DNA of 64,000 nucleotides, from sequence record OZ195776.1; one strand, given 5' to 3'. The notes below the pieces were generated by a model. The model searched no databases and was not told the origin of the DNA. It worked only from the letters and a program-made list of their open reading frames with translations. Made by a program: the position numbers and the translations under genes. How positions within the stretch are numbered: position 1 is the first letter of the stretch; every line of letters begins with the position of its first letter. Below are positions 3,067 through 37,780 of the stretch, one piece after another.

Positions 3067-3969
3067 ATGAAAAATACAAACAAAATTCGTTATTCAGAAA
3101 TGTTCATGTCAGTCCAAGGTGAAGGCGCTTATACAGGTCGTCTTTCAGTTTGGATTCGTATGCACAAATGTAATCTACAGTGTCGTGGTTTCTCTCAACC
3201 AGATCCGTTAGATCGTAGTACTTGGAAACTTGAGTACGATGAATTTGCAAAATCTGACCAATTGATTGCTCTGCAGAAAATCGAAGATCTACCAGTGTTC
3301 AAAAGCGGTTGTGATTCGTACTACTCTTGGCATCCTGCATTCAAACGTTTCATGTTTGAAGATAGCGCAGAAGACATTGCAACACAGTTGCTTGATCTAA
3401 CACCACAAAAGTCTTTTGTGTGTCAACCAGCAAATGCTGACGTTCATCTTTGTTTCACCGGTGGTGAGGCGATGATTAACCAAGACAACATTCAAGCAAT
3501 CATCGAAGAGCTGATTGACGGTGGGGATTTCCCAACGCACATCACAATCGAAACAAATGGTACTCAGAAAATGCGTCCGCATTTCCGTAACTTCTTGCAA
3601 ATGATTCGTGAAGAACATGGCGTGAAGGTTACATTCAGCATGAGTCCTAAGCTACCAAGTGTAACTGGTGAAAGTGCGAAGAAAACAATTCGTCCAGAAG
3701 TGGTTCGTTCATACGAAGAAGCTGGTTACAACAGTTTCTTGAAGTTTGTAGTGAATCCTGACGAGCGTTCTTGGAACGACCTAGACAAAGCAGTAGCGAT
3801 GTATCGTGAAGCTGGCGTGACTGTTCCGATTTGGGTAATGCCAGTTGGTGCTACGCAGCAAGAACAAGAATCTCATGCTGGTGAATTGGCTAACCGAGCA
3901 ATTGCTCTTGGTTACAATGTTTCTGCTCGTGTTCACAATTACCTTTGGGGTAATGCAGTTGGTGTTTAA
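3067..3969 (+). CDS. queE: 7-carboxy-7-deazaguanine synthase (QueE-like radical SAM)
   Basis: YSEMFMSVQGEG, RMHKCNLQC...GCDS, FTGGE, IETNG, SPKL, RVHNYLWGN motifs. Confidence 0.88.
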   Translation: MKNTNKIRYSEMFMSVQGEGAYTGRLSVWIRMHKCNLQCRGFSQPDPLDRSTWKLEYDEFAKSDQLIALQKIEDLPVFKSGCDSYYSWHPAFKRFMFEDSAEDIATQLLDLTPQKSFVCQPANADVHLCFTGGEAMINQDNIQAIIEELIDGGDFPTHITIETNGTQKMRPHFRNFLQMIREEHGVKVTFSMSPKLPSVTGESAKKTIRPEVVRSYEEAGYNSFLKFVVNPDERSWNDLDKAVAMYREAGVTVPIWVMPVGATQQEQESHAGELANRAIALGYNVSARVHNYLWGNAVGV

Positions 3970-7189: not shown

Positions 7190-7498
7190 ATGTACCTAAG
7201 ACTCACTGACTTGGGGAACTTCGACGTTCTTACAAGTCACATGTACGACGCGGCTGGTAACAAGATTGATCGAGATTTGATGCTCGGGGATGTTGTCACT
7301 ATTAACGAAACAGTAGATAATACTGTTCCTGGCGGCGTCTACACGCGAATAACTCGTGTATCAGATAAGAGTTGGATTACTGTGATGGGTCATGTCTTGT
7401 TCGATCGTTCATCTAAGATGTATCGAATGAAAGAAGACCGATTCCGAATGCAGTTTGAAAAACTCAAAGCCAGAGAAGTGGCTGATATCGTTAATTGA
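7190..7498 (+). CDS. Hypothetical protein
   Basis: ATG 7190 just after the phoH stop; followed by a terminator. Confidence 0.65.
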   Translation: MYLRLTDLGNFDVLTSHMYDAAGNKIDRDLMLGDVVTINETVDNTVPGGVYTRITRVSDKSWITVMGHVLFDRSSKMYRMKEDRFRMQFEKLKAREVADIVN

Positions 7499-7503
7499 TT
7501 TTT

Positions 7504-7528
7504 AAAGCCGGCTTGTCCGGCTTTTTTT
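7504..7528 (+). terminator. Rho-independent terminator
   Basis: aaagccgg-cttgt-ccggcttttttt. Confidence 0.8.
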
Positions 7529-7542
7529 GTTTTGATGGGAAC

Positions 7543-8217
7543 ATGATAGAGAATACCTCAATACCTCTTAATCTGCACAACGTTTCCAACTACCAGTGGC
7601 AATACGTCGATTCCACACGACTAAGTTACGAGCATATTCGATGTGCTTGTAATACTTGGTTTGATAATAGATCGACGGAAAACGACAGAAGCGATTTGGT
7701 AGTTGAAATCAGTTTAATGGATGCAGAAGTACAGCGTTTTCACGACTCTGTAAGGCTATATGCCAACTTTAAGCCTCATGATAAGGCAAATGGTGGTTTT
7801 ATGCGAACGAAGCGCTTAAAACACGATTTTAGAACGTTCTACGATGCACAGGAGGTTTGGTTCAAACAGATCCTTGCGGAACATCGAGTTGATGTGAAGC
7901 AGCGAAATGGAACAATGCGTAAGAAGAACCCAGTATTTTACACATGTGGCATTCGACCAGCTAAGATAAGAAAAACGTTGAATAAAGGATGTGGTTTGGT
8001 GATAATGGATACGGACGGAATTACACCTAAAGTATTCGCAATCGCAATCGGCAACGTTAGATACACATTCGAAGCAATGGACAGTTTAGGTAACGGTGCT
8101 TGTAATGCACAACAAGGTAGAAAAGTTGTTGACGTTAGCGAGTGTATCGATTACAATGACGATGTTGAAGATTGGGATTTTGATTCAGAAATCGAAGATT
8201 TATTATTAGACGAGTGA
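7543..8217 (+). CDS. Hypothetical protein
   Basis: ATG 7543 after ggga, downstream of the terminator; acidic C-terminus. Confidence 0.65.
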   Translation: MIENTSIPLNLHNVSNYQWQYVDSTRLSYEHIRCACNTWFDNRSTENDRSDLVVEISLMDAEVQRFHDSVRLYANFKPHDKANGGFMRTKRLKHDFRTFYDAQEVWFKQILAEHRVDVKQRNGTMRKKNPVFYTCGIRPAKIRKTLNKGCGLVIMDTDGITPKVFAIAIGNVRYTFEAMDSLGNGACNAQQGRKVVDVSECIDYNDDVEDWDFDSEIEDLLLDE

Positions 8218-8227
8218 GTATTACATA

Positions 8228-9073
8228 ATGGAAACTATTAACCGTAAAAACTTTACAAATGGCTTTGTTGCTGCATTGGCATTAGAAGATGGGATGAAAA
8301 TCGAAACCACAGCTACTTGCCTACCAGTCGCTACCGAAATGCGTGGTACTGGTCGAACAGACAATCGAGTCGATTACAACAATCACGACGATGTCAATTG
8401 GAAGCAAAAGTACATGATTGGTGTATCCACTCAAAGTGGTTGTCCAGTTAAGTGTAAGTTCTGTGCGGTTAATAAGCTGACTGAGAAACAAGGTTGGCGT
8501 AATCTAACTACAGAAGAAATCATCGAACAAGTTCAGTGGGCTATTGACGAGAGTGGTCACAATCCCAACGATGCTGAAATCTTCCGTGTGTTGTTTACTC
8601 GAATGGGTGAACCGGCAATGAACGTGAAGAACGTAATCGAAGCTGCTCGAATTCTGAAAGTGCAATTCCCACACGTACGCATTCAAATCAGTACAATTGG
8701 TTTTGGTGTACACAGCCGTCGTCTTGTTATTGAGTTGGCAAAACTAACAGAAGAGTTCGATGATGAGTTCATTGAACTTCAATTCAGCATTCATAGCACA
8801 GACAACGAGTTCCGCAAATGGTTGCAACACAACGGTGTGCTCGAGAACGAGACGATTAGTAACTTGATCGCCGCCCATTGGCAACCTGAAAAACGCAATT
8901 GGAAGGTTACGCTGAATTTTGCACTCGCGGAAGATACTCCATTTGATGTAGCGAAGCTACGTGAGCAATTCAACCCAGAGCAAGTTTTCATCAAAGTTTC
9001 TCCTATCAACGAGAATAGCGAATCTGATGACAACGGCATTAAAAGTCTATTCAAAAATGAAAACACAATTTAA
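8228..9073 (+). CDS. RlmN/Cfr-like radical SAM enzyme lacking the C-terminal Cys segment
   Basis: IET..., VSTQSGCPVKCKFC (CxxxCxxC), RMGEP, ISTIG, FSIHSTDNEFR motifs of the RlmN family; ends before the AACGQL region. Confidence 0.85.
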   Translation: METINRKNFTNGFVAALALEDGMKIETTATCLPVATEMRGTGRTDNRVDYNNHDDVNWKQKYMIGVSTQSGCPVKCKFCAVNKLTEKQGWRNLTTEEIIEQVQWAIDESGHNPNDAEIFRVLFTRMGEPAMNVKNVIEAARILKVQFPHVRIQISTIGFGVHSRRLVIELAKLTEEFDDEFIELQFSIHSTDNEFRKWLQHNGVLENETISNLIAAHWQPEKRNWKVTLNFALAEDTPFDVAKLREQFNPEQVFIKVSPINENSESDDNGIKSLFKNENTI

Positions 9074-9083
9074 AGGTATTATT

Positions 9084-9308
9084 ATGAACGGTAATGACGT
9101 AATGAAAGAAGTAAAAGAAGCTGGCTTTGACGCGGGTTTAGCGATCGCAACCGATGCTGAAGTAAACGCGGGTGCAGCGTGCGGTCAAATGGCAATTCTT
9201 GATGAAGTAAAAGAAGCGGGGTTCGATGCAGGTCTTGCAATCGCAACTGACGCGGAAGTGGATGCTGGTGCAGCATGTGGTCAAATGGCAATTTTGGAAG
9301 ATGCATAA
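9084..9308 (+). CDS. 74-aa peptide with two copies of an RlmN C-terminal-like AACGQ module
   Basis: Own RBS (aaggt) and ATG; 2 x 32-aa repeat EVKEAGFDAGLAIATDAEV[N/D]AGAACGQMAIL[D/E]. Confidence 0.85.
   Translation: MNGNDVMKEVKEAGFDAGLAIATDAEVNAGAACGQMAILDEVKEAGFDAGLAIATDAEVDAGAACGQMAILEDA
9108..9299 (+). repeat. Tandem 96-bp coding repeat (2 copies)
   Basis: 9108-9203 and 9204-9299: 30/32 aa identical, many synonymous nucleotide differences. Confidence 0.9.
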
Positions 9309-9562
9309 TGAGTAAGAAGCAGTTCAACCCAGCAGTTATTGAATTAGCAAAAGACATCGCAGCGTTTGCATCCATCACGGCCAAGGTCGGATTCGAAGAT
9401 TGTCTGACCAACCAAAAGTTATTTGTTGAAATGTGTAACGAAGCAGGATTTACCACAGTATCTGGTAAGCCACTAACTCAAATGAATTTCCGTCATATGA
9501 TGGGTCGATTGCCCGACGAAGTGAAACTAGAAATACGTGATTCGTTTGACTTCAACGCATAA
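9308..9562 (+). CDS. Hypothetical protein (possible DNA-binding)
   Basis: TAATG coupling; GFTTVSGKPLTQMNFRHM resembles recombinase-type DNA-binding helices. Confidence 0.6.
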   Translation: MSKKQFNPAVIELAKDIAAFASITAKVGFEDCLTNQKLFVEMCNEAGFTTVSGKPLTQMNFRHMMGRLPDEVKLEIRDSFDFNA

Positions 9563-9565
9563 AGG

Positions 9566-9589
9566 AAAAGCCGCATATGCGGCTTTTTT
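9566..9589. terminator. Bidirectional terminator between convergent genes
   Basis: aaaagccgc-atat-gcggctttttt. Confidence 0.8.
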
Positions 9590-9971
9590 ATTTTGTTATC
9601 TTAGACTCAAGTTTACCAACAGTCACTACAAGCTGGTTAGTGGTCTTGGTTAAGTTGTTCGTAGCAATTGTTAAGTTTTCAAGCGCTGTTGTCATTTTAG
9701 CGTTCGCCACTTCAAGATTGTTAATACGATCAAGCGTAATATTCTGAGCCTTTGTTAGGCTACTGAATTGCTGTTCTTTTGTCAAAATCTGACGTTCAAG
9801 TACAGCGATGCGCGTGTCTTTGTTAGCATCTTCTTGAATAAGATATCGTCTCTCGTCCATAGCCTTTGATAAGTCTTTGATATCGTCGTTCATGACGTAC
9901 AAAGCACCAATGGCGGGGATTGCGATGGCGAGTATGGTTAGTAAGTTCTTTCTGATCCAGTTGGTATCCAT
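9588..9971 (-). CDS. Membrane-anchored coiled-coil protein (possible holin/lysis protein)
   Basis: Single N-terminal TM (LLTILAIAIPAIGALYVM) plus coiled coil; follows the tail-fibre genes, where T4 has its holin. Confidence 0.5.
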   Translation of the reverse strand: MDTNWIRKNLLTILAIAIPAIGALYVMNDDIKDLSKAMDERRYLIQEDANKDTRIAVLERQILTKEQQFSSLTKAQNITLDRINNLEVANAKMTTALENLTIATNNLTKTTNQLVVTVGKLESKITK

Positions 9972-29661: not shown

Positions 29662-29737
29662 TGGTGGAAGTGGTGGGACTCGAACCCACGACCGACGGCT
29701 TATCGGGCCGGCGCTCTACCAACTGAGCTACACTTCC
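29662..29737 (-). tRNA. tRNA-Ile(GAT)
   Basis: Cloverleaf folded by hand; loop CCGATAA (C33); CCA encoded. Confidence 0.88.
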
Positions 29738-29744
29738 ATTAATA

Positions 29745-29820
29745 TGGTGCACCCTACTGGAATCGAACCAGTGACGCGAAGATCTTCAATCTACCGCTCT
29801 ACCATCTGAGCTAAGGGTGC
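29745..29820 (-). tRNA. tRNA-Phe(GAA)
   Basis: Cloverleaf; loop TTGAAGA; CCA. Confidence 0.92.
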
Positions 29821-30029
29821 ATATTGTATTCGTTTATATCAAAATCGGTTAACGACTCAACGAGAATAGTTGCTTTGTAACCTACGTACAATTCATCTCC
29901 GTACCACAAGTCGGTGCATTCCTCTACAATATAAGAAGAACCAAGAACGATGTGCTTGATGTTAAAGAATTGCAAATTGCGTTCAAGAACTGTTTTAGCT
30001 CTATCTGTCAATGGTTTGATTTTGATCAT
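29811..30029 (-). CDS. Hypothetical protein between tRNAs
   Basis: 72 aa ORF, RBS aggag. Confidence 0.55.
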   Translation of the reverse strand: MIKIKPLTDRAKTVLERNLQFFNIKHIVLGSSYIVEECTDLWYGDELYVGYKATILVESLTDFDINEYNMHP

Positions 30030-30060
30030 AACATTCTCCTATTTGGAGAATATTTATAAT

Positions 30061-30136
30061 TGGAGCGAATGATGAGGTTCGAACTCACGACCTGTTGCTT
30101 GGCAAGCAACCGCTCTACCAACTGAGCTACATTCGC
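30061..30136 (-). tRNA. tRNA-Gly(GCC)
   Basis: Cloverleaf; loop TTGCCAA; CCA. Confidence 0.93.
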
Positions 30137-30597
30137 ATTTGAACTTTTCGGTTCCCGTGTATATTTTGTATGTGGCACGGACCACAACCCCTACGCCTTG
30201 GTGCGTCAATGGAGCTAGTATTCGTTATCAAGTGCTGCTTCCATGTGCTACTCCTTATAGGTTTTCCAAACCCTGATTTCGCACTCTCGGCAGTTTCTAC
30301 GTCAACTTTTCTTCCGATATCCTTTTGAAACACTCACTATCCAGTTGGATTCGCATTGCTAAGTGAGGTCCGCATCCTTAATCGATTTGTCGTACACCTG
30401 AAAATTTTAATTGCTTTGATCGAACAAATTCTTTATTGCTTTCAAATTAGTCAAATCAACTTGAAGTTGCCGTAGCATTACTTCGTTCTTTGTTGATTTA
30501 ATCTGCCTCTCCAAATCCTTTATCAGAAATCCAATAGATGACTTGGTGATATTGAAATAGTTTATATTGAAACTCGCATCTGTTAAACCTTTTTGTT

Positions 30598-30674
30598 TGG
30601 TGGATAGTGCTGGATTTGAACCAGCGACCAACGGATTATGATTCCGACGAACTACCAGACTGTTCTAACTATCC
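30598..30674 (-). tRNA. tRNA-Met(CAT), probably elongator
   Basis: Cloverleaf; loop ATCATAA; CCA. Confidence 0.85.
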
Positions 30675-30676
30675 AA

Positions 30677-30752
30677 TGGTGGAGAATATCGGAATCGAAC
30701 CGATGACCTCCTCCTTGCAAGGGAGGCGCTCTACCAACTGAGCTAAGACCCC
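30677..30752 (-). tRNA. tRNA-Ala(TGC)
   Basis: G3-U70 wobble; loop TTGCAA; CCA. Confidence 0.92.
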
Positions 30753-30846
30753 ATTTATTAAATTCAAGATTGTCTATTGCAGGTGTCCGGACTTACTACT
30801 GCATAAAGCTGCTGCCTTCGTTACCTGGTTCAACAATCTTGGAAAC

Positions 30847-30924
30847 TGGCAGGAGATGTGGGACTCGAACCCAACAACCTTCGGATTTGGAATCCGCTGC
30901 TCTACCAATTAGAGCTAATCTCCT
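30847..30924 (-). tRNA. tRNA-Trp(CCA)
   Basis: Cloverleaf; loop TTCCAAA; CCA. Confidence 0.92.
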
Positions 30925-30978
30925 ATTGATGATTTTATGTTTTTAACGTGGAGATAATCAACAACTCTCACAATCAAT

Positions 30979-31054
30979 TGGGGTGACCTGCGGGGTTCGA
31001 ACCCGCGACCGCCGGAATCACAATCCAGAGCTCTACCAACTGAGCTAAGGCCAC
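30979..31054 (-). tRNA. tRNA-His(GTG)
   Basis: Loop TTGTGAT; C73 discriminator. Confidence 0.92.
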
Positions 31055-31299
31055 ATCTAAAAACACTCAACGAATGCGCTTAGATGTGATTGCCTCACAT
31101 CGAATAGTTTCTCGGACTATTCCAAGACTCTGTTACAAGTCACCGCCCTATTCTATCTGTTGTTATACTCGTGAAGGGTACCGAGTGGTCTTTTGCAAAA
31201 CTATCAAGAGTTTAGCTTCGTGCAAGGCTCTTGGACCTTCTACCGATTAGCGATCGGTATTTCCAGCAATAGAACTAATCGCTCTACTCGTAAAGTTTT

Positions 31300-31410
31300 G
31301 AAGAATGATGGGAATTGAACCCACTTCGGATAACAGCATTGTAAAGAGGCTATCGATTATTTCCTACCGGCTTGTTTCAGACCTGCATTTCCTCTTTGCG
31401 AGCATTCTTT
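31300..31410 (-). ncRNA. tRNA-like RNA with non-tRNA central domain (T4 RNA C/D-like placement)
   Basis: Acceptor AAGAATG/CATTCTT and T arm GTGGG-TTCAATT-CCCAT, but no canonical D or anticodon arm. Confidence 0.5.
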
Positions 31411-31415
31411 CAAAT

Positions 31416-31506
31416 TGGCGGAGAGACAGAGACTCGAACTCTGACGACGCTATTAACATCGAACGGCTTTCAAGGCCGCGGCAGTACCAATTATGCTTAC
31501 CTCTCC
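31416..31506 (-). tRNA. tRNA-Ser(TGA)
   Basis: Long variable arm; loop CTTGAAA; CCA. Confidence 0.92.
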
Positions 31507-31512
31507 AGAATA

Positions 31513-31597
31513 TGGTGCGCAGGGTGGGACTCGAACCCACACGCCCTAAGGCCACGGAATCTAAATCCGCGTTGTCTACCAATTCCAGCACCTGCGC
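31513..31597 (-). tRNA. tRNA-Leu(TAG)
   Basis: Variable arm; loop TTTAGAT; CCA. Confidence 0.93.
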
Positions 31598-31599
31598 AT

Positions 31600-32015
31600 G
31601 TTATTTCTACACCAGACAATAGGACTTACTTCGACTTATTCCAACGTCTAACGTATTAGCTTCACAAGGTCGTCACCTATCATATTCGGATTCACCGTGG
31701 TTGCCACCTATTCGATATAACGTCATCGAAAACGACCTGGTATTCACAAGGGCATAATGCCTATTTCCAAGTAAACCAACTTCGTCGTAATCATGCTAAA
31801 GAGCAAGAATCGAGGTAGTTACCTAATCAACACTCCGTAGAGCTGTTTCCAAGTATTGAAAACGCATCAAAGAGGCGTGGCCTATCATTCTTAGTTAGGT
31901 TTTATTGTTTGCTGGACACTGTCTTCTGTGCAGAACTTTTAATGTGGTTGTTTTTACGATTTCAAGAGAGCCACACTTCCTTGAGTAACCGTCCTAATCA
32001 AGTTAGGAAGGATAA
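31600..32015 (-). ncRNA. About 415-nt structured non-coding RNA (GOLLD/ROOL-like setting, family unassigned)
   Basis: No ORF; multiple nested stems (cttcct/aggaag, cctaa/ttagg, tgtgg/ccaca); between two tRNAs. Confidence 0.5.
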
Positions 32016-32017
32016 TA

Positions 32018-32094
32018 TGGCGGATCCTCAGGGATTTGAACCCCGAACCTTGCGCTTAACAGGCGCCCGCTCTAACCATTGGAGCTAAGGATCC
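32018..32094 (-). tRNA. tRNA-Asn(GTT)
   Basis: Loop CTGTTAA; CCA. Confidence 0.93.
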
Positions 32095-32100
32095 GTAATA

Positions 32101-32177
32101 TGGCGCACCGAGTAGGACTCGAACCTACCTCAATCCTCGTTCGTAGCGAGGTGCCAATCCAGATTGACTACCGGTGC
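32101..32177 (-). tRNA. tRNA-Arg(ACG)
   Basis: Loop CTACGAA; CCA. Confidence 0.9.
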
Positions 32178-32184
32178 AAAAATT

Positions 32185-32261
32185 TGGCGGGTGTGACGGG
32201 ATTTGAACCCGCTACCTACGACGTGACAGGCCGTTATGCAAACCAACTACACCTCACACCC
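32185..32261 (-). tRNA. tRNA-Asp(GTC)
   Basis: Loop CTGTCAC; CCA. Confidence 0.92.
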
Positions 32262-32262
32262 T

Positions 32263-32478
32263 TTAAGAAACTACATGTACAATACCTAGGATTGGAAGAA
32301 CTATAAACCAACAAAGCAAAATTAAGAAGAACAATCCTGTACCAATGATACCAGGTAATTGCTTTAGACGATATCCCCAAAGTCCATACTTCTTGATCTG
32401 TTTCTGACGTTCTAACTCTGCTCGACGAGCGATATTCTCGGAGCTAAAGTAGTTCAGTATATCTCTTGTATCAAACAT
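32263..32478 (-). CDS. Small membrane protein
   Basis: C-terminal hydrophobic helix; lies between tRNAs. Confidence 0.55.
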   Translation of the reverse strand: MFDTRDILNYFSSENIARRAELERQKQIKKYGLWGYRLKQLPGIIGTGLFFLILLCWFIVLPILGIVHVVS

Positions 32479-32493
32479 ATAATTCTCATAAAC

Positions 32494-32571
32494 TGGTCGG
32501 AACTGTAGGATTCGAACCTACGACCCCTTGCTCCCAAAGCAAGCGCTGCTACCAAACTGAGCTAAGTTCCG
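32494..32571 (-). tRNA. tRNA-Pro(TGG)
   Basis: Loop TTTGGGA; C1-G72; CCA. Confidence 0.93.
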
Positions 32572-32646
32572 AAAATAACTGGATACGTTTGTCTTTTTTT
32601 TCAAATAAAAAATTAGATTTAATGTTTGCTGAATGTATCCATAAAC

Positions 32647-32722
32647 TGGCTGGCGTAGGAGGACTCGAACCTCCGACCATCGGTATCAAAAACCGATGCG
32701 CTACCAACTGCGCTATACGCCA
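32647..32722 (-). tRNA. tRNA-Gln(TTG)
   Basis: Loop TTTTGAT; U1-A72; CCA. Confidence 0.92.
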
Positions 32723-32729
32723 ATAAAAC

Positions 32730-32806
32730 TGGTGGGTGTAGAAGGACTCGAACCTTCGACCACTCGATTAAAAGTCGAGTGCTCTAACCAACTGAGCTAC
32801 ACACCC
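32730..32806 (-). tRNA. tRNA-Lys(TTT)
   Basis: Loop CTTTTAA; CCA. Confidence 0.94.
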
Positions 32807-32878
32807 AAATCTTGTAACTGAGATAAGCATCTCATGTTTCCATTTGAAAGTAAACCAGTTATTTGATTTACTTTGAAA

Positions 32879-32955
32879 TGGAAGCGGGAGGTGGATTTGA
32901 ACCACCGACCTTTGGGTTATGAGCCCAATAAGCTACCAGACTGCTCCATCCCGCT
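32879..32955 (-). tRNA. tRNA-fMet(CAT), initiator-like
   Basis: Three consecutive G-C pairs (GGG/CCC) in the anticodon stem; loop CTCATAA. Confidence 0.88.
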
Positions 32956-32961
32956 ACAATT

Positions 32962-33045
32962 TGGTGGGAACACATACCTCCGTGGGCTTATCAACAATAC
33001 TTCACTGACTCGTAAAGTTGATTACCTTCTCCGAAGAGAACTCCC
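32962..33045 (-). pseudogene. Degenerate tRNA-like element, possibly tRNA-Val(TAC)
   Basis: GGGA.../...TCCC-A-CCA ends and a TT-TAC-GA loop, but no TTCGA T-loop. Confidence 0.4.
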
Positions 33046-33051
33046 ATAATT

Positions 33052-33128
33052 TGGTTCTCGAGACGGGAATCGAACCCGCTAATCCCACCTTGAAAGGGTG
33101 GTGACTCAACCAGATGGTCTGCCCGAGA
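33052..33128 (-). tRNA. tRNA-Glu(TTC)
   Basis: Loop CTTTCAA; CCA. Confidence 0.9.
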
Positions 33129-33134
33129 ATTGTT

Positions 33135-33220
33135 TGGTGGGCCATCCTGGACTCGAACCAGGAACTCCGTGAGGAGGACGGATTTACAATCCGCTGCAAT
33201 CGCCATTCTGCCAACGACCC
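33135..33220 (-). tRNA. tRNA-Tyr(GTA)
   Basis: Variable arm; loop TTGTAAA; CCA. Confidence 0.92.
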
Positions 33221-33245
33221 AATGTATTTTTAACTAATGTTATCC

Positions 33246-33320
33246 TGGTGCTCTGTGACGGATTCGAACCGCCGTCACCTCATTACAAGTGAGGTGCTAA
33301 ACCAACTCAGCTAACAGAGC
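33246..33320 (-). tRNA. tRNA-Thr(TGT)
   Basis: Loop CTTGTAA; CCA. Confidence 0.92.
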
Positions 33321-33372
33321 AACGTATTTGTAGTTATTATCCAGCATTCCAGCTGGTTGTAAACTTGAAAGC

Positions 33373-33402
33373 AAAAAAAAAGCCGCTTTAATAAGCGGCT
33401 TC
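33373..33402 (-). terminator. Rho-independent terminator inside the tRNA cluster
   Basis: Minus strand agccgctt-atta-aagcggct followed by a T9 run. Confidence 0.8.
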
Positions 33403-33431
33403 TATAAATCTTTGGAATATAGAAGACGCAG

Positions 33432-33488
33432 TTAGCTCGCAGGATTTGTTTCGTAAATGTAAAATTTTTGAAGTGAATGTGCGAACAT
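33432..33488 (-). CDS. 18-aa mini ORF (possible leader peptide)
   Basis: MFAHSLQKFYIYETNPAS with RBS aaggaa, just upstream of the terminator. Confidence 0.35.
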   Translation of the reverse strand: MFAHSLQKFYIYETNPAS

Positions 33489-33610
33489 AATTGATTCCTT
33501 TGGGAAAAATAAACTTTTTTTCTTTCTCTTACTTTATATATAACAGCTTACTCAAGGATTCGGCTGTTTTAAACAAAAAATTTGAATTTTTTTCAAATTA
33601 ATTTAGAATG

Positions 33611-33702
33611 TGGCGGAAGGAGAGGGACTCGAACCCTCAGACCGGCTATTAACCAGTCGATTCCTTAGCAGGGAACTCCGATACCAATTATGGGATCCTT
33701 CC
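33611..33702 (-). tRNA. tRNA-Ser(GCT)
   Basis: Long variable arm; loop CTGCTAA; CCA. Confidence 0.92.
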
Positions 33703-33712
33703 GTTGTATATC

Positions 33713-33797
33713 TGGTACGGGTAGCGGGAGTCGAACCCGCACCTCCTAAGAGAGTGGATTTTAAGTCCACAGCATATGCCAATTTCGCCATACCCGT
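33713..33797 (-). tRNA. tRNA-Leu(TAA)
   Basis: Loop CTTAAAA; variable arm; CCA. Confidence 0.92.
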
Positions 33798-33804
33798 ATA
33801 AATT

Positions 33805-33891
33805 TGGTGCCAGTGGCCGGACTCGAACCGGCACGGTATTTCTACCACAGGATTTTGAATCCTGCGCGCCTACCAATTACGCCACACTGGC
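33805..33891 (-). tRNA. tRNA-Leu(CAA)
   Basis: Loop TTCAAAA; variable arm; CCA. Confidence 0.92.
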
Positions 33892-33892
33892 T

Positions 33893-33970
33893 TGGAGCTG
33901 CGTGAGGGATTCGAACCCCCGAAGCTTGGATTTGCAATCCAGTACATTAGACCAACTCTGCCAACACAGC
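33893..33970 (-). tRNA. tRNA-Cys(GCA)
   Basis: Loop TTGCAAA; U73; CCA. Confidence 0.9.
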
Positions 33971-34057
33971 ATTTTTCAAGTTCACACTTTTGATTAGTAC
34001 GGTAGTGACTCTCCGTAATGTGGTGACCCGCCGTGGACTCGAACCACGCCCTATCGA

Positions 34058-34534
34058 TTATTCTGAACGCTCTGTGCGTCTGCGTCTATACGTTGATGTT
34101 TGTGAATGACAATTTGGACACAACCAGGATAGGTTTTCCTTCCGATTATCGTTGCTAATTCCATTAACATGTTCCAGCTCCAATGTAAGAGGTTTCCCAT
34201 TCCAAGTATCCGGAATTCCACACTCATCACAGTGGTTTCGATAGAACCCTAATCGAATTGATATTTGTCGGGCGCTGCTACGAGGTGCAGTGCAATTCTC
34301 TACAAAGAACGATTCTTCGGTGTGTGAAAATTTATTACGCTTAAACGTCTTTTTAACATCAAAGTGTTCAGTAGACACGTCGTACTTATCACACAGCACT
34401 TTCAATCGATTTATATTGTATGTACAGACCGTTATACCAACACCACGGCACACATCACTCCAACAAAACGAATCACTTGCTACGGTGATTAGCTGTTCTA
34501 ACGTATAGTGCTTAAAATCTTTATTGCTTTTCAT
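34058..34534 (-). CDS. HNH homing endonuclease
   Basis: CDEC...LELEHVNGISNDNRKENLSWLCPNCH; stop codon overlaps the tRNA 3' exon. Confidence 0.92.
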   Translation of the reverse strand: MKSNKDFKHYTLEQLITVASDSFCWSDVCRGVGITVCTYNINRLKVLCDKYDVSTEHFDVKKTFKRNKFSHTEESFFVENCTAPRSSARQISIRLGFYRNHCDECGIPDTWNGKPLTLELEHVNGISNDNRKENLSWLCPNCHSQTSTYRRRRTERSE

Positions 34535-34540
34535 TTTCTA

Positions 34541-34578
34541 CTCCTACTGCTGATGTGTTATTTATACAGCAGTAGGAG
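34541..34578 (-). promoter_or_regulatory. Late promoter TATAAATA inside an RBS-sequestering hairpin
   Basis: 12-bp inverted repeat ctcctactgctg/cagcagtaggag; loop holds TATAAATA (34566-34559); 3' arm holds AGGAG 6 nt before the ATG. Confidence 0.85.
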
Positions 34579-34627
34579 ATAATGAGTCGATTGCTCTCAA
34601 CCAGGTGAGCTATCGGGCCACATAAAC

Positions 34628-34704
34628 TGGAGCAAGTGACGGGACTCGAACCCGCGACCACCGACTTGGAAGGACGGAACTCTACCAACTGAGTTTACAC
34701 TTGC
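34628..34704 (-). tRNA. tRNA-Gly(TCC)
   Basis: Loop CTTCCAA; CCA. Confidence 0.9.
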
Positions 34705-34710
34705 AAAACT

Positions 34711-34815
34711 GGATGTACAAAATAGCTCACCATTACCTCAACCCAGAGTAACGTTAGTCTTTTACGACTTGGCTCCTGATATGTAATTTTAGGTTATTGT
34801 TTGCGGTAGACATCC
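34711..34815 (-). ncRNA. Permuted copy of the tRNA mini-intron element flanking about 70 nt of non-tRNA sequence
   Basis: Minus strand GGATG-TCTACCGCAA-AC-AAT ... TATTTTGTA-CATCC. Confidence 0.6.
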
Positions 34816-34843
34816 AAGGTCGAACCTTGACGAATCAAGATCT

Positions 34844-35173
34844 TTAAAACTGTTCACCTTTCGGCTCTTCGGTATTTAGAAGAGTAACCAAATCGTTTAG
34901 CGCATTATACTTGTTTATTTCAAGTTTTGTCGCTGGACGAAGGATTTCAGTGCTTTCCCAAGAATGAGATGTGTAGTGTTCAACATCATGAACCCAATCC
35001 CAATTGTGTAGATATGCACTATCCGGAAGTTTAATGGAATGTTTGAAGTTGGTTTTCAACTTACGTAAAAGAGTATCTGTGCTAACTGAGCCAGAGTAAA
35101 CCGCTTTTGCCAATTGTTCATCGGTAATTCGCAATTTTCTTGTAACCAGTTCGCTACCTTCAATCATGTTCAT
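34844..35173 (-). CDS. Hypothetical protein (paralog of the 35170 gene)
   Basis: Shared TDEQL..A...GS and LR.AT..EI..Y.A.N.L motifs. Confidence 0.7.
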   Translation of the reverse strand: MNMIEGSELVTRKLRITDEQLAKAVYSGSVSTDTLLRKLKTNFKHSIKLPDSAYLHNWDWVHDVEHYTSHSWESTEILRPATKLEINKYNALNDLVTLLNTEEPKGEQF

Positions 35174-35481
35174 TTCTTCATCCCGTATTCGTGACGTAGA
35201 ACATTGATTGCATCATAGATCGCAATCTCACCCATTGTTGCTTTGCGAAGAAACTTCTTCTCGATCCAGCGACCGGTACCATCCATATCTTGGTGGTAAT
35301 GCCAATTGCCGTGTTCTAAGAATGCTTCTTTACGAAGCTCACCTTGCTTGCGCAGGTTCAATCCAAGTTTGTCAATCAGAACCTCAGATGGTATAGAACC
35401 GTCTGAGAACGCTTCTAAGAGCTGTTCGTCTGTAACTTGAATCTCACAAGGAACAAGACGAGTACCTTTAATAGTATTCAT
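35170..35481 (-). CDS. Hypothetical protein (paralog of the 34844 gene)
   Basis: Same shared motifs; RBS gagg. Confidence 0.7.
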   Translation of the reverse strand: MNTIKGTRLVPCEIQVTDEQLLEAFSDGSIPSEVLIDKLGLNLRKQGELRKEAFLEHGNWHYHQDMDGTGRWIEKKFLRKATMGEIAIYDAINVLRHEYGMKK

Positions 35482-35500
35482 TATATCCTCTTTAAATGAG

Positions 35501-35576
35501 TGGCACGCCTGGAGGGATTCGAACCCACGACCCGAAACTTAGAAGGTTCCTGCTCTTCCAACTGAGCTACAAGCGC
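35501..35576 (-). tRNA. tRNA-Arg(TCT)
   Basis: Loop CTTCTAA; CCA. Confidence 0.93.
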
Positions 35577-35577
35577 A

Positions 35578-36051
35578 TTATTTCAACGTAAATTTCAAAT
35601 TGCGATAATTGTACTTAGAGCCGTTATTACGACAAGTGTTAGTCCAGAAGTCACTCCAATCAATTTTGACGGGACATTTATCTGATCCAACGCGAGTACA
35701 GAACACATCCAAGTGCGGATATTTCAATTGCAGGTTAGCTGCCGTTTGGCGAACTGCCAGTGCATGCTCAGTACGTCTTTTAGCAAGTTCTCTACGAGAG
35801 TACGTGTTTTGCCAAAAATGACTACGCCAAATATTAACACGCTTCTCATCCCAACCCATGCTAAACGAATGTTCAACATAACCAGATAATTTACCAGTTT
35901 TAGGGTCACGAGCGAATATTGCGTAACAACGATGTCGAGTGAAATCGGTTCGTTCATATTTGTCGCAGTTAATAACGTTACCTTTCTTGGTGGTACGAGA
36001 GTGTTTAATCATCGGACACCTCGAAAGATTTAAAGCGTTTATCGAACTCAC
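35578..36051 (-). CDS. Hypothetical basic protein (start may be MIKHSR)
   Basis: Long ORF between RNA genes. Confidence 0.6.
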   Translation of the reverse strand: MSSINALNLSRCPMIKHSRTTKKGNVINCDKYERTDFTRHRCYAIFARDPKTGKLSGYVEHSFSMGWDEKRVNIWRSHFWQNTYSRRELAKRRTEHALAVRQTAANLQLKYPHLDVFCTRVGSDKCPVKIDWSDFWTNTCRNNGSKYNYRNLKFTLK

Positions 36052-36190
36052 TTAGACAAGTATCAGCCCAAGACGTTGCTACGTCTTTTTCTCTGCAATC
36101 ATTTGCATTTGCTGTTGATGTCCACGCTCGAACCCACACATCACGACGTTGTTCTTCGTGACGAGCTTCTGCTTTTGTAAATTTTGGCAT
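36005..36190 (-). CDS. Hypothetical protein
   Basis: MPKFTKAEARHEEQRRDVW..., RBS gagg. Confidence 0.6.
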   Translation of the reverse strand: MPKFTKAEARHEEQRRDVWVRAWTSTANANDCREKDVATSWADTCLSEFDKRFKSFEVSDD

Positions 36191-36206
36191 TTTAATTTCC
36201 TCTTGA

Positions 36207-36475
36207 TGCCCCACCGTGGATTCGAACCACGCAGTCCATTCATTTTCCTAATACGCAAGGGGCTTGTTAGATTTAGAACCTTAACGTCAATAGAAACTAC
36301 AATTCATCGCTTTCCTGGTGTTAATAACTAACACTGCTTTCACACCAGTAATTACTCAACTCTGTATCTCAATGAAACAAGTTCGTCGGTGAAATTGTCG
36401 TTAATTAGACGACGCATTCTCGGAACAAGTTAGTCTGAGCATGACCATGTCAACGGTCTCCAGTTAGAATGGGGC
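36207..36475 (-). ncRNA. tRNA-like RNA with a large internal domain (5' end uncertain)
   Basis: 3' CGTGG-TTCGAAT-CCACG-GTGGGGC-A pairs with GCCCCAT 270 nt upstream; a closer alternative is GCCCCTT at about 36265. Confidence 0.4.
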
Positions 36476-36497
36476 TTTGTTTAATACATAATGTAAT

Positions 36498-36616
36498 CGG
36501 CCGGTGTAGGACTCGAACCTACGACCACGAGCTTAACGGGCTATTGAGTTTAGTGTGCGGTATCGATTCTTGACAGAATCATTTCATACGTGCTCTACCA
36601 ACTGAGCTAACCGGCC
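36498..36616 (-). tRNA. tRNA-Asn(GTT) with a 46-nt insert (36543-36588) at position 28/29
   Basis: Removing the insert gives stem CG|AGC / GCTCG with loop CCGTTAA. Confidence 0.8.
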
Positions 36617-36626
36617 ATAATTTATT

Positions 36627-37034
36627 TTACTCTGATTTAACATCCAAAGTAAACAGTTTTGCATTGCTTTCTTTCATCGGTTGAACGCCGACTATTTCTT
36701 CTGCAAGTAACGATGGGACAACTTGCTTCGGAATTTTGACGGTAACGCCACTTTCCTTTGCTTGCTCGCGAAGTTCTTTTGAACGTTCACGTAACATTGC
36801 AAGATGTTCTTCACGTTTTGTTACTATGTCATCAAGGTGCTCGTCGATAGTACCGATTTCGTACTTCTCACCGTAAGCAAAGGCAGTATGCCAGTGAATC
36901 TTTTTAAATTCAGCAATCTGCTTGATGTCTTTGATGACGCGTACTTCGTCGTAAACCCAACCACAGTTGATACATTCAATTGCGATTTGATCTCCGTTTT
37001 CATCGAAGAATAAAGCGTTACTTGGTAAACTCAT
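36627..37034 (-). CDS. Hypothetical protein
   Basis: 135 aa ORF. Confidence 0.65.
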   Translation of the reverse strand: MSLPSNALFFDENGDQIAIECINCGWVYDEVRVIKDIKQIAEFKKIHWHTAFAYGEKYEIGTIDEHLDDIVTKREEHLAMLRERSKELREQAKESGVTVKIPKQVVPSLLAEEIVGVQPMKESNAKLFTLDVKSE

Positions 37035-37060
37035 AATATAATCTCACGAAATAAAACAAT

Positions 37061-37190
37061 TGGTAGAGGGTGCAGGATTCGAACCTGCGCCACGGAATTT
37101 AAGAGTTTCAATGCAATTTTGGTTGCCGCAACTATTCTTTCCAGAATAATGTTTGTGCTACGTGTGCTTGCCGTTTTACACCAACCCTCT
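37061..37190 (-). tRNA. tRNA-Lys(CTT)-like with a 51-nt insert (37110-37160) at position 28/29
   Basis: Removing the insert gives CG|GAA / TTCCG around A-CTCTTAA-A; CCA encoded. Confidence 0.7.
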
Positions 37191-37289
37191 ACGAATTGTT
37201 CTAGTTGATAGATTCTGAGTTCATCTTTCACACTCAAGGTTCTATCGGACCTGCGGCTAAGTGACTAAGCTTCGCCGTTAAAATAAACA

Positions 37290-37431
37290 GGATGTACAAA
37301 TCTTCTGGTGCGTTTTCCAATTCGCTACCTCCCCGTCGATACATTATTGGTGGGGAGGGTTGGGATTCGAACCCAACTCATCACAAAAGTGAACCAGTTC
37401 TACTCGATTAATATTACGCTGTAGACATCCT
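37290..37431 (-). tRNA. Circularly permuted class II tRNA (Leu-like) flanked by the split mini-intron
   Basis: Minus-strand order: intron 3' half, 3' exon (variable arm, T arm, CCA at 37348-37350), 13-nt linker, 5' exon GGGGAGGTAGCGAATTGGAAAACGCACC, intron 5' half. Confidence 0.7.
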
Positions 37432-37436
37432 TAAAT

Positions 37437-37515
37437 TGGCCAGTAGTAAGGGACTCGAACCCAAGCACGGACTCCACGAGGGCGACTGCTTTACCTAACA
37501 TAAGCTAAACTACTT
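37437..37515 (-). pseudogene. Degenerate tRNA (anticodon stem unpaired; possibly Arg TCG)
   Basis: Acceptor, D and T arms and CCA present; anticodon arm does not pair. Confidence 0.55.
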
Positions 37516-37522
37516 TCAAATT

Positions 37523-37641
37523 TGGCGCGTGTGACAGGACTCGAACCTGTGACCTCCGGCGGGATTAATGTAATTGCTGTAACGATTCATTACTGAATCC
37601 ATTTATTAGGCCGGCATTCTAACCAACTGAATTACACACGC
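37523..37641 (-). tRNA. tRNA-Asp-like with a 42-45 nt insert in the anticodon loop (about 37564-37608)
   Basis: Asp-type D arm (ATTC/GAAT), stem CCGGC/GCCGG; same insert consensus; possible mature loop CT-ATC-CC. Confidence 0.7.
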
Positions 37642-37659
37642 GATGTTAAAAACAATTTG

Positions 37660-37780
37660 AGCAGCGTACAGGATTCGAACCTGTGTTACCTCCTGGAAAT
37701 GGAATTAGCGTTAGTTGCTGAAAGCATCTTTACCAAGATACATTGCTTTTAGGTGTCCTAGGCCACTAGACGAACGCTGC
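37660..37780 (-). tRNA. tRNA-Glu(TTC) with a 48-nt insert (37704-37751) at position 28/29
   Basis: Removing the insert gives CC|TCC / GGAGG with loop ATTTCCA; Glu-type D arm. Confidence 0.8.

Follow-up and report, generated by a model that had tools for sequence, protein, structure and literature searches.

The stretch of DNA analysed here, a window of 64,000 nt from sequence record OZ195776.1, carries two consecutive open reading frames (ORFs) at positions 8,228 to 9,308. Bases 7400-9700 of the window match Vibrio phage D479 (OZ195776.1, 257.8 kb; isolated from seawater and oysters) at 100% identity. The D479 genome is T4-like, and the neighbourhood of the two ORFs encodes PhoH, topoisomerase II, a DNA end protector, the AsiA anti-sigma factor and a long tail fibre. 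Both ORFs are labelled 'hypothetical protein' in the deposited record. The first encodes a radical S-adenosylmethionine (SAM) enzyme core related to RlmN and Cfr, and the second a small acidic peptide with the methyl-carrier cysteine segment that is missing from the core. The two ORFs probably encode the halves of a two-chain class-A-type (RlmN/Cfr-like) radical SAM methyl synthase, with the cysteine arm supplied in trans, as judged from sequence relationships.

The D479 core matches the Pfam model Radical_SAM (PF04055) at E 1e-11, and its top NCBIfam match is the RlmN model TIGR00048 (E 3.2e-20, model positions 101-298 of 355), with Cfr also among the best. RlmN and Cfr are the sole matches of the core in a phmmer search of PDB sequences. 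A profile of 54 cores aligns by hhalign with a profile of 23 canonical RlmN sequences at E 1.4e-31, core residues 59-264 corresponding to RlmN 112-315. Since the alignment begins only at RlmN residue 112, the core is devoid of the N-terminal helical domain of RlmN; a short beta-hairpin, not a helical domain, precedes the RlmN-like part of the D479 protein. At the opposite end the D479 core extends past RlmN position ~315 by a 17-residue family-specific tail, which begins just after the strand equivalent to INLIPWNP and includes a pair of near-invariant residues, N269 and N279. The cluster cysteines C72, C76 and C79 are invariant in 54/54 cores. In the phmmer alignment to wild-type E. coli RlmN (3RF9), MIGVSTQSGC stands opposite TLCVSSQVGC, which, together with the profile-profile alignment, places Gly65 at the position of the RlmN resolving cysteine C118. 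Members of the family are publicly annotated as hypothetical, as 'radical SAM protein' or, automatically, as '23S rRNA (adenine2503-C2)-methyltransferase'. Among the PADLOC defence models the D479 core finds a marginal match only (E 5e-4, 17 bits) and the peptide none.

The second ORF is open from 8961 in a frame different from that of the core, and its likely start is the ATG at 9084, located 10 nt past the TAA of the core behind the sequence AAAGG. A profile of 21 peptides aligns by hhalign with the canonical RlmN profile at E 3.8e-5 and 71% probability, peptide residues 4-39 corresponding to RlmN 327-360; against E. coli RlmN alone the peptide profile gives E 6.6e-4. By this alignment, the segment comprising the last strand and the AACGQ methyl-carrier loop of RlmN is the very piece absent from the core, and it follows the core in the right order. 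The homology is detectable by profile methods and not by direct sequence search: the peptide found nothing meaningful among PDB sequences and Pfam, and pairwise BLASTP against E. coli RlmN matched the AACGQ core alone (E 0.017). The GenBank coding sequence VPHD479_0342 (93 aa) has its start at 9027, inside the enzyme gene; the start at 9084 (74 aa) is the likely one because the peptides of relatives begin 10-12 nt past the enzyme stop.

Tandem Repeats Finder (TRF) identifies two 96-nt tandem repeats in the peptide ORF, equal to two 32-residue repeats, each reading ...AGFDAGLAIATDAEV(N/D)AGAACGQMAIL (also given as ...KEAGFDAGLAIATDAEV(N/D)AGAACGQMAIL). The two-repeat form is shared with L094, a 92% identical relative with the same PhoH...AsiA context; in relatives that are 80% and 74% identical the peptide is single-copy and 41-43 aa long. 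Between the D479 repeats 21/96 nt differ; 14 of the codon changes are synonymous and 3 non-synonymous (L094: 13 and 3), and, as most of the differences are synonymous, both peptide copies have been kept by purifying selection. Peptides of the family are strongly acidic, with an isoelectric point (pI) of ~4.1-4.4 (4.05 in D479), and conserve the docking strand and the Cys loop in phages of hosts as different as Bacteroides, Vibrio and Moorella; the tail is variable. The preliminary description, made from the letters of the sequence, had proposed an RlmN-like enzyme split over two genes, the carrier-Cys segment lying on a separate peptide with its own ribosome-binding site and ATG and with AGAACGQMA occurring twice. 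Each of these claims holds: the profile alignments and the recurrence across phages support the split, the peptide profile covers the RlmN segment that is absent from the core, and the ATG at 9084, the AAAGG element and the two repeats are found as described. The core N-terminal hairpin NGFVAALALEDGMKIETTATC (8258-8320) and the peptide stretch AGFDAGLAIATDAEVNAGAAC (9120-9182) share the same G-F...C spacing of 19 residues, and MAFFT aligned one onto the other; on sequence comparison this likeness may be due to chance or may be the trace of an old internal duplication.

The split arrangement recurs in distantly related phages. The INPHARED phage genomes were searched by tblastn with the core and with the peptide. 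Core homologues are found in the FelixO1-like Pectobacterium phages Arno18, Arno162, Wc4 and Wc4-1 and Yersinia phage P778 (60% identity), in Moorella phage MTATph1 (37%) and in the crAss-like Kehishuvirus 'tikkala' (37%); the peptide search returned the same 8 genomes as contain close core homologues, and no others. A peptide of 40-43 aa lies directly 3' of the core in MTATph1 and tikkala, and one unrelated gene stands between core and peptide in Arno18 and P778. In IMG/VR, 261 contigs encode a core relative, 80 loci of which were fetched. About 77 of the 80 have a same-strand peptide ORF, either directly downstream or ~1.1 kb downstream past two genes, and intervening genes are found in many crAss-like phages. 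The pattern fails at one contig end, in one frameshifted copy and at two loci with no peptide within the flank. A peptide gene that is frameshifted in the metagenomic contig L011 (3330-3520) is intact in the near-identical L010, pointing to an assembly error or a pseudogene. Nearly all loci have a core:peptide gene ratio of 1:1, and the split persists across cores that are merely ~38% identical.

Searched against 1.84 billion representative proteins, the peptide profile matches 130 clusters (50% identity) at E <= 1e-3 and 84 at E <= 1e-10; nearly all of the 130 are free-standing proteins of 30-130 aa. In a scan of GTDB, cores with the motif MIG[VIA]S (~262-278 aa) are paired with a separate peptide in 13/15 loci, and all homologues of the Cys type, canonical RlmN of 340-420 aa as well as short two-Cys forms, have [AG][AG]CGQ within the chain. 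The family is almost exclusively viral and is distributed over hundreds of unrelated phages of Proteobacteria, Bacteroidota and Firmicutes hosts, the core-peptide pair being present in T4-like, FelixO1-like, crAss-like and Moorella phage lineages. The recurrence of same-strand adjacency in the viral loci and in the Gly-type loci of GTDB excludes chance pairing. A frameshift, readthrough or sequencing error disguising a single fused protein, the artefact that the preliminary description wished to see excluded, is rejected as well: the frame of the core is conserved to its stop, independent relatives preserve the stop, the spacer and the ATG, and in other phages one or two genes part the core from the peptide. 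The survey of homologues that it had proposed likewise finds the split conserved.

Cysteine conservation sets the family apart from canonical RlmN. The Gly at the C118 position is invariant in all 54 cores, as the preliminary description had read it from IGVSTQ in D479, and the three cluster ligands are the only cysteines conserved throughout the cores. A further core cysteine, C31 (in TATCLP), is clade-specific, being present in 32 of the 54 cores, D479 included, and replaced by Phe or Tyr in the remaining 22. One Cys is invariant in the peptide; in some lineages a second follows soon after it (CGQMCLV, CGQLAIICE), and in many it does not. Neither core C31 nor a second peptide Cys is present at 42 loci. 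According to these alignments, the family is a one-cysteine system with the cysteine in trans. A second Cys, whether core C31 or the peptide CxxxC or Cx6C, was considered as the general resolving residue and rejected; C31 is not the general solution of the family, since 22 members have Phe or Tyr in its place and any second Cys is missing at 42 loci. The preliminary description had named another Cys at the resolving position, with ordinary m2A turnover, as one finding that would overturn its reading, and no such Cys exists family-wide, although D479 itself does have the extra C31. In D479, C31 or the Cys of the second repeat may act as a helper, as far as sequence can tell.

The same residues would be called upon if the D479 pair were an ordinary RlmN in two pieces, with C31 or the second-repeat Cys in the role of C118, making 2-methyladenosine (m2A37 or m2A2503), for instance in the 25 tRNAs of the phage. 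The E. coli isoacceptors that carry m2A37 are those for His, Arg(ACG), Asp, Gln and Glu, and the window contains tRNA genes for all five; moreover, a fused RlmN-like gene with both cysteines adjoins tRNA genes in Stenotrophomonas phage ANB28. We nevertheless regard this explanation as distinctly improbable, as the distribution of C31 and of second cysteines argues against it, the N-terminal domain of RlmN is absent, and bacterial hosts already encode an RlmN of their own.

Several natural fusions bear on the relationship between core and peptide. The best PHROG match of the D479 core is phrog_24834 (E 4e-24, profile positions 46-276 of 336), the C-terminal part of which is encoded separately in D479. 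This fused sister family of ~335 aa is represented by Bacteroides phage Versailles and 46 further IMG/VR loci (47 loci). Like the split family, it is without the N-terminal domain and C118 and has the same set of four conserved cysteines only, three for the cluster and one carrier; it differs in being a single chain, in having an invariant Thr at the C118 position and in its C-terminal GFDV..ITCGNA, with a loop of ITCGNA against the AACGQ of the split family. Short fused proteins of ~310 aa from ANB28, Salmonella phage Arash and Vibrio phage 166E36-1 are likewise phage-encoded and without the N-terminal domain, but hold both cysteines in-chain (VICCSTQ or TVMC[IV]STQ, and GGGCGQ), and their chemistry is therefore probably conventional. 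Both groups belong to the more distant phage RlmN-like single chains, of ~310-335 aa. In a quick, small maximum-likelihood tree rooted on E. coli RlmN, the Thr-type fused family groups with the split family with a Shimodaira-Hasegawa-like approximate likelihood ratio test (SH-aLRT) support of 91, and the two-Cys phage group falls outside; this small tree suggests one loss of C118 followed by gene fission.

Re-fusion appears to have taken place as well. P0233 (L143, 44-991; two samples), a protein of 315 aa, has the peptide at the N-terminus of the core, joined by a 16-residue linker, and nests within the split clade in the tree. It is best explained, on its sequence and position in the tree, as a circular permutation relative to RlmN that arose by secondary re-fusion. 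The P0233 gene is followed by a 239-aa radical SAM gene (phrog_17662). A further fusion, P0146, unites a class I SAM methyltransferase of 148 aa with the peptide and was recovered from three samples, on at least five contigs. The natural fusions (P0233, P0146 and the sister family) functionally link peptide and core as one unit. A cellular family of ~300-315 aa with the motif KWV[LI][IV][IV]S..GCP..CKFC was also encountered in GTDB metagenome-assembled genomes (L162-L195; Thermoplasmata, Bacteroidales, Ignavibacteria and others). Its residue at the C118 position is Ile or Val, and searching its sequences by pattern brought up no CG[QNM] carrier motif; on these features it may constitute another RlmN-related family without either catalytic Cys.

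Structure models of the D479 core and of P0233 were built with AlphaFold2 (AF2). The core model has a mean predicted local distance difference test score (pLDDT) of 92.5 and a predicted template modelling score (pTM) of 0.91; the P0233 model has 83.7 and 0.85. A joint alignment of P0233, cores and peptides was discarded as AF2 input, because the core N-terminal hairpin was misaligned onto the peptide, and a different alignment was used. The peptide part of P0233 is modelled as a helix (2-10) and a strand (14-17) at pLDDT 80-89 despite zero alignment coverage, and since DSSP assigns the strand, it has a pairing partner. The Cys loop (21-32) has pLDDT below 50, as expected for a counterpart of the C355 loop of RlmN, which is mobile (PMC9692996). 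A Foldseek search with the P0233 model has RlmN or Cfr as all of its top 11 PDB matches (E 2.7e-11 to 1e-6), and none else is significant.

By homology with RlmN and Cfr, the core would house the [4Fe-4S] cluster and the SAM site and would cover the RlmN barrel as far as residue ~315. The acidic peptide of ~40 residues would dock onto it through a helix and a beta-strand (EAGF-DAGLAIAT) by strand addition, and would offer a mobile AACGQ loop as the counterpart of the C355 loop of RlmN. The Cys of the peptide would be S-methylated from SAM, in some phages maybe through a dedicated small class I methyltransferase. A second SAM would then be cleaved, the resulting 5'-deoxyadenosyl radical would take a hydrogen from the S-methyl group, and the S-CH2 radical would add to an sp2 carbon of an adenine-like target.

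The canonical resolution of the ensuing adduct is impossible in this family, since Gly is invariant at the C118 position and neither core nor peptide conserves a second Cys. The outcome that we tentatively favour is catalytic C-methylation, in which a non-cysteine base or solvent would carry out the deprotonation and the peptide would serve as a stoichiometric or exchangeable carrier subunit. This is rated the likeliest outcome because the clade without C118 includes fused and re-fused enzymes and has, at this position, a fixed Gly or Thr and no drift. C118 is currently viewed as the general base triggering radical fragmentation, not as an obligatory disulfide partner (PMC9692996), and another base or ordered solvent could therefore stand in for it. 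The persistent split, the kept duplication and the fusion of a methyltransferase to the peptide fit an exchangeable carrier arm; these features do not discriminate between turnover and sacrifice.

A number of observations weigh against this interpretation. The D479 core scores 72.4 bits against the TIGR00048 cut-off of 290, and 52 against 633 for PRK11194, thus not reaching the RlmN-equivalog threshold; with a score so far under the family cut-off, an RlmN-like reaction is an extrapolation. A Foldseek search with the model of the D479 core returned generic radical SAM folds only, with no RlmN in the top 50, an outcome regarded as an idiosyncrasy of the search. No replacement base for C118 was identified among the sequences of the family, and in RlmN and Cfr the loss of C118 or C105 abolishes turnover and traps the adduct (PMC9692996). 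The split, the duplicated peptide and the methyltransferase-peptide fusion would equally fit a peptide that is consumed.

In the latter case the peptide would be a sacrificial carrier, remaining attached through a Cys-S-CH2- thioether to adenine C2 or C8, be it in RNA or DNA of host or phage or in a nucleotide; the split would let the core be reused with a fresh peptide, and the double-headed D479 peptide would provide two shots or a cross-link between two targets. Exactly such an adduct is trapped by C118A RlmN, which remains cross-linked to tRNA (5HR7; PMC9692996). The invariant Gly, the 42 loci without a second Cys, the retention of the split over cores ~38% identical and the purifying selection on the tandem repeat in two phages are all in keeping with sacrifice, as is a peptide that tolerates N- and C-terminal additions and occurs fused to a methyltransferase that could charge it. 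However, the sister family and P0233 would have to spend a whole enzyme of 315-335 aa per event, the gene ratio is 1:1 nearly everywhere, the strong acidity of the peptide would be odd for a permanent nucleic-acid adduct, no conserved protease or processing partner accompanies the pair, and a non-Cys base is chemically admissible (PMC9692996). We therefore consider sacrifice rather unlikely, although among the alternatives to turnover it ranks first. The preliminary description had suggested that the peptide may be consumed, permanently cross-linked to RNA or DNA, or a RiPP-like substrate; the case for a stuck adduct as the necessary outcome is weakened by the fused Thr-type sister family, the re-fused P0233 and the general-base view of C118.

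The core and the peptide are the sole constant partners across loci. Recurrent neighbours include NAMPT, NMNAT-Nudix, ThyX, NrdD, NrdG, RtcB and an FkbM methyltransferase, and, depending on lineage, dCTP deaminase, 5-hydroxymethyldeoxyuridine-DNA-kinase-like genes and Band_7/SPFH. An extra MoaA/viperin-like radical SAM gene with a small methyltransferase gene accompanies the pair in ~37/80 loci, in two distant clades and two gene orders. A conserved third gene was sought among these and rejected: the radical SAM and methyltransferase genes are restricted to the ~37 loci and are not present in D479, and the other neighbours are recurrent, not constant. The company of nucleotide-metabolism and counter-defence genes hints at a nucleotide or nucleic-acid target. 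NAMPT is located directly beside RlmN-like genes of both the split and the fused two-Cys types (L009-L011, L013, L014, L089), and in L013 and L014 NMNAT-Nudix is also present, making up a phage NAD+ salvage pair. In L091, with a core 80% identical to that of D479, two genes with the helical domain of 5-hydroxymethyldeoxyuridine (5-hmdU) DNA kinase (PF18723; 1903-2934 and 4679-5647) flank the pair, together with an HD-domain gene; this context is of the thymidine-hypermodification type.

Where a small peptide adjoins a methyltransferase and one or two radical SAM genes, the locus resembles the gene clusters of ribosomally synthesized and post-translationally modified peptides (RiPPs), and the D479 peptide has a faint NCBIfam match to a sactipeptide model (E 0.33). 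The peptide would then be both substrate and end product, its Cys modified by the core, with the second radical SAM enzyme and the methyltransferase also acting on it at the loci that have them. This seems very unlikely: the peptide is homologous to and collinear with the C-terminus of the enzyme family itself and is fused to the core in relatives, its docking strand and Cys loop are conserved across diverse hosts, D479 and many other loci have no accessory enzymes, and the neighbourhoods surveyed, in a non-exhaustive survey, contained no leader-recognition domain (RiPP recognition element, RRE), protease or exporter.

In D479 the stop of the peptide gene overlaps the ATG of asiA (ATAATG, 9306-9310), a case of start-stop coupling, and core, peptide and asiA look like one early-type transcription unit, apparently co-transcribed, as judged by consensus matches to a promoter and a terminator (Table 1). 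The annotated asiA ORF (window 9275-9562, 95 aa) has a Pfam AsiA match that starts only at residue 22, and the relative L094 has an 84-aa asiA with the same start type as the ATG at 9308 of D479; asiA probably starts at 9308, where its translation would be coupled to that of the peptide gene. Immediately 5' of the core lies a 240-aa ORF (window 7495-8217) that matches phrog_15600 at E 2e-56, is without a Pfam or PADLOC match and is not kept beside the module in other lineages. The 25 tRNA genes of the window, the five isoacceptors listed above among them, are clustered at 29662-37746 on the minus strand, and beside them ARAGORN calls a tRNA with a four-base anticodon (gcaa) at 37659-37746. Besides the core gene, D479 has at least two others of the radical SAM type: one, QueE-like, at window ~3067-3969, and one of 348 aa at record positions 173070-174116, upstream of the window.

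Table 1. Features of the two-gene locus in the D479 window and of the accessory gene pair found at other loci (coordinates of the window, unless a locus is named)
Feature	Coordinates	Strand	Basis and remarks
Candidate sigma-70-like promoter TTGACG-17-TACAAT	8129..8157	+	~70 nt 5' of the core gene; consensus scan, 10/12 matches; consensus match alone, no functional evidence
RlmN/Cfr-like radical SAM core, 281 aa	8228..9073	+	Without RlmN N-terminal domain, C118 and C-terminal carrier segment
Gly65 codon GGT, RlmN C118 position	8420..8422	+	Alignments; invariant in 54/54 family members
CX3CX2C (C72, C76, C79), radical SAM [4Fe-4S] cluster ligands	8441..8464	+	Sequence reading, Pfam PF04055, invariance in family alignment
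10-nt spacer AGGTATTATT	9074..9083	+	With the preceding TAA makes the AAAGG Shine-Dalgarno-like element of the peptide gene
Acidic 74-aa peptide, pI 4.05, equivalent of RlmN 327-360 in two tandem copies	9084..9308	+	Peptide homologues adjoin the core in unrelated phages
Peptide repeat 1 MKEVKEAGFDAGLAIATDAEVNAGAACGQMAI; carrier Cys33 codon TGC 9180-9182	9102..9197	+	TRF period 96; codon comparison
Peptide repeat 2 LDEVKEAGFDAGLAIATDAEVDAGAACGQMAI; carrier Cys65 codon TGT 9276-9278	9198..9293	+	TRF; codon comparison; two-repeat form also in L094
asiA anti-sigma factor	9308..9562	+	Pfam AsiA E 4.6e-27; context gene, outside the enzyme; same arrangement in L094
Intrinsic-terminator-like hairpin with T-run, 3' of asiA	9564..9589	+	11-bp stem, 5 G-C pairs
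MoaA/viperin-like radical SAM gene (~250-265 aa)	L024 3280-4047		PADLOC pVip E 4e-13; also in L014, L015, L023, L145
148-aa class I SAM methyltransferase gene	L024 4022-4468		Also in L014, L015, L023, L145

What defines the class A radical SAM methylases is a pair of catalytic cysteines within one polypeptide, the carrier C355/C338 and the resolving or base cysteine C118/C105 (PMC9692996). The D479 enzyme chain contains neither: Gly65 occupies the position of C118, and the carrier Cys is found only on the peptide. With RlmN and Cfr (PDB 3RFA, 5HR7, 9P0P) the D479 family shares the CX3CX2C, GEP and SxH motifs and the AACGQ carrier loop after a GF-strand element. It differs from them in the carrier Cys being on a separate product, in the invariant Gly in place of C118/C105, in the absence of the N-terminal helical RNA-recognition domain, in a ~28-residue insertion before the MIGVS strand and a C-terminal tail of its own, in the score of the D479 core (72 bits against curated RlmN/Cfr cut-offs of 290-633) and in its nearly all-viral distribution. 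A segment supplied in trans has an analogue in GrcA/YfiD, a small 'spare part' protein whose radical-bearing segment is homologous to the C-terminus of a larger enzyme and which rescues that enzyme when it is damaged; its fold and chemistry are unrelated, and the D479 core, unlike the larger enzyme, never has the segment. No account of an RlmN-like enzyme that is split, takes its Cys in trans or has a single Cys turned up in the searchable literature, in agreement with the preliminary description, which knew of none; an early survey merely mentions Cfr/RlmN homologues in viruses (Kaminska et al. 2010, PMC2836569).

The core-peptide pair thus varies a known enzyme class in both architecture and mechanism, and this variant is widespread and apparently undescribed. 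If the enzyme turns over, it would represent a second, cysteine-independent route of resolving the methylene-bridged intermediate; if the peptide is sacrificed, the pair would be a natural system of covalent peptide-nucleobase coupling. Improbable though it appears, the peptide could be an encoded single-use methylene donor, the core welding its Cys-S-CH2 to adenine C2 or C8 in RNA, DNA or a signalling nucleotide. Many phages would in that case carry out programmed conjugation of peptide to nucleic acid or nucleotide early in infection, and the double-headed peptide of D479 could tether two targets. For enzymologists, the family offers a naturally separable methyl-carrier arm, which can be supplied in trans as labelled or mutant peptide. 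For the phages themselves, the pair points to an unrecognised, widespread early function, possibly RNA or DNA modification or counter-defence.

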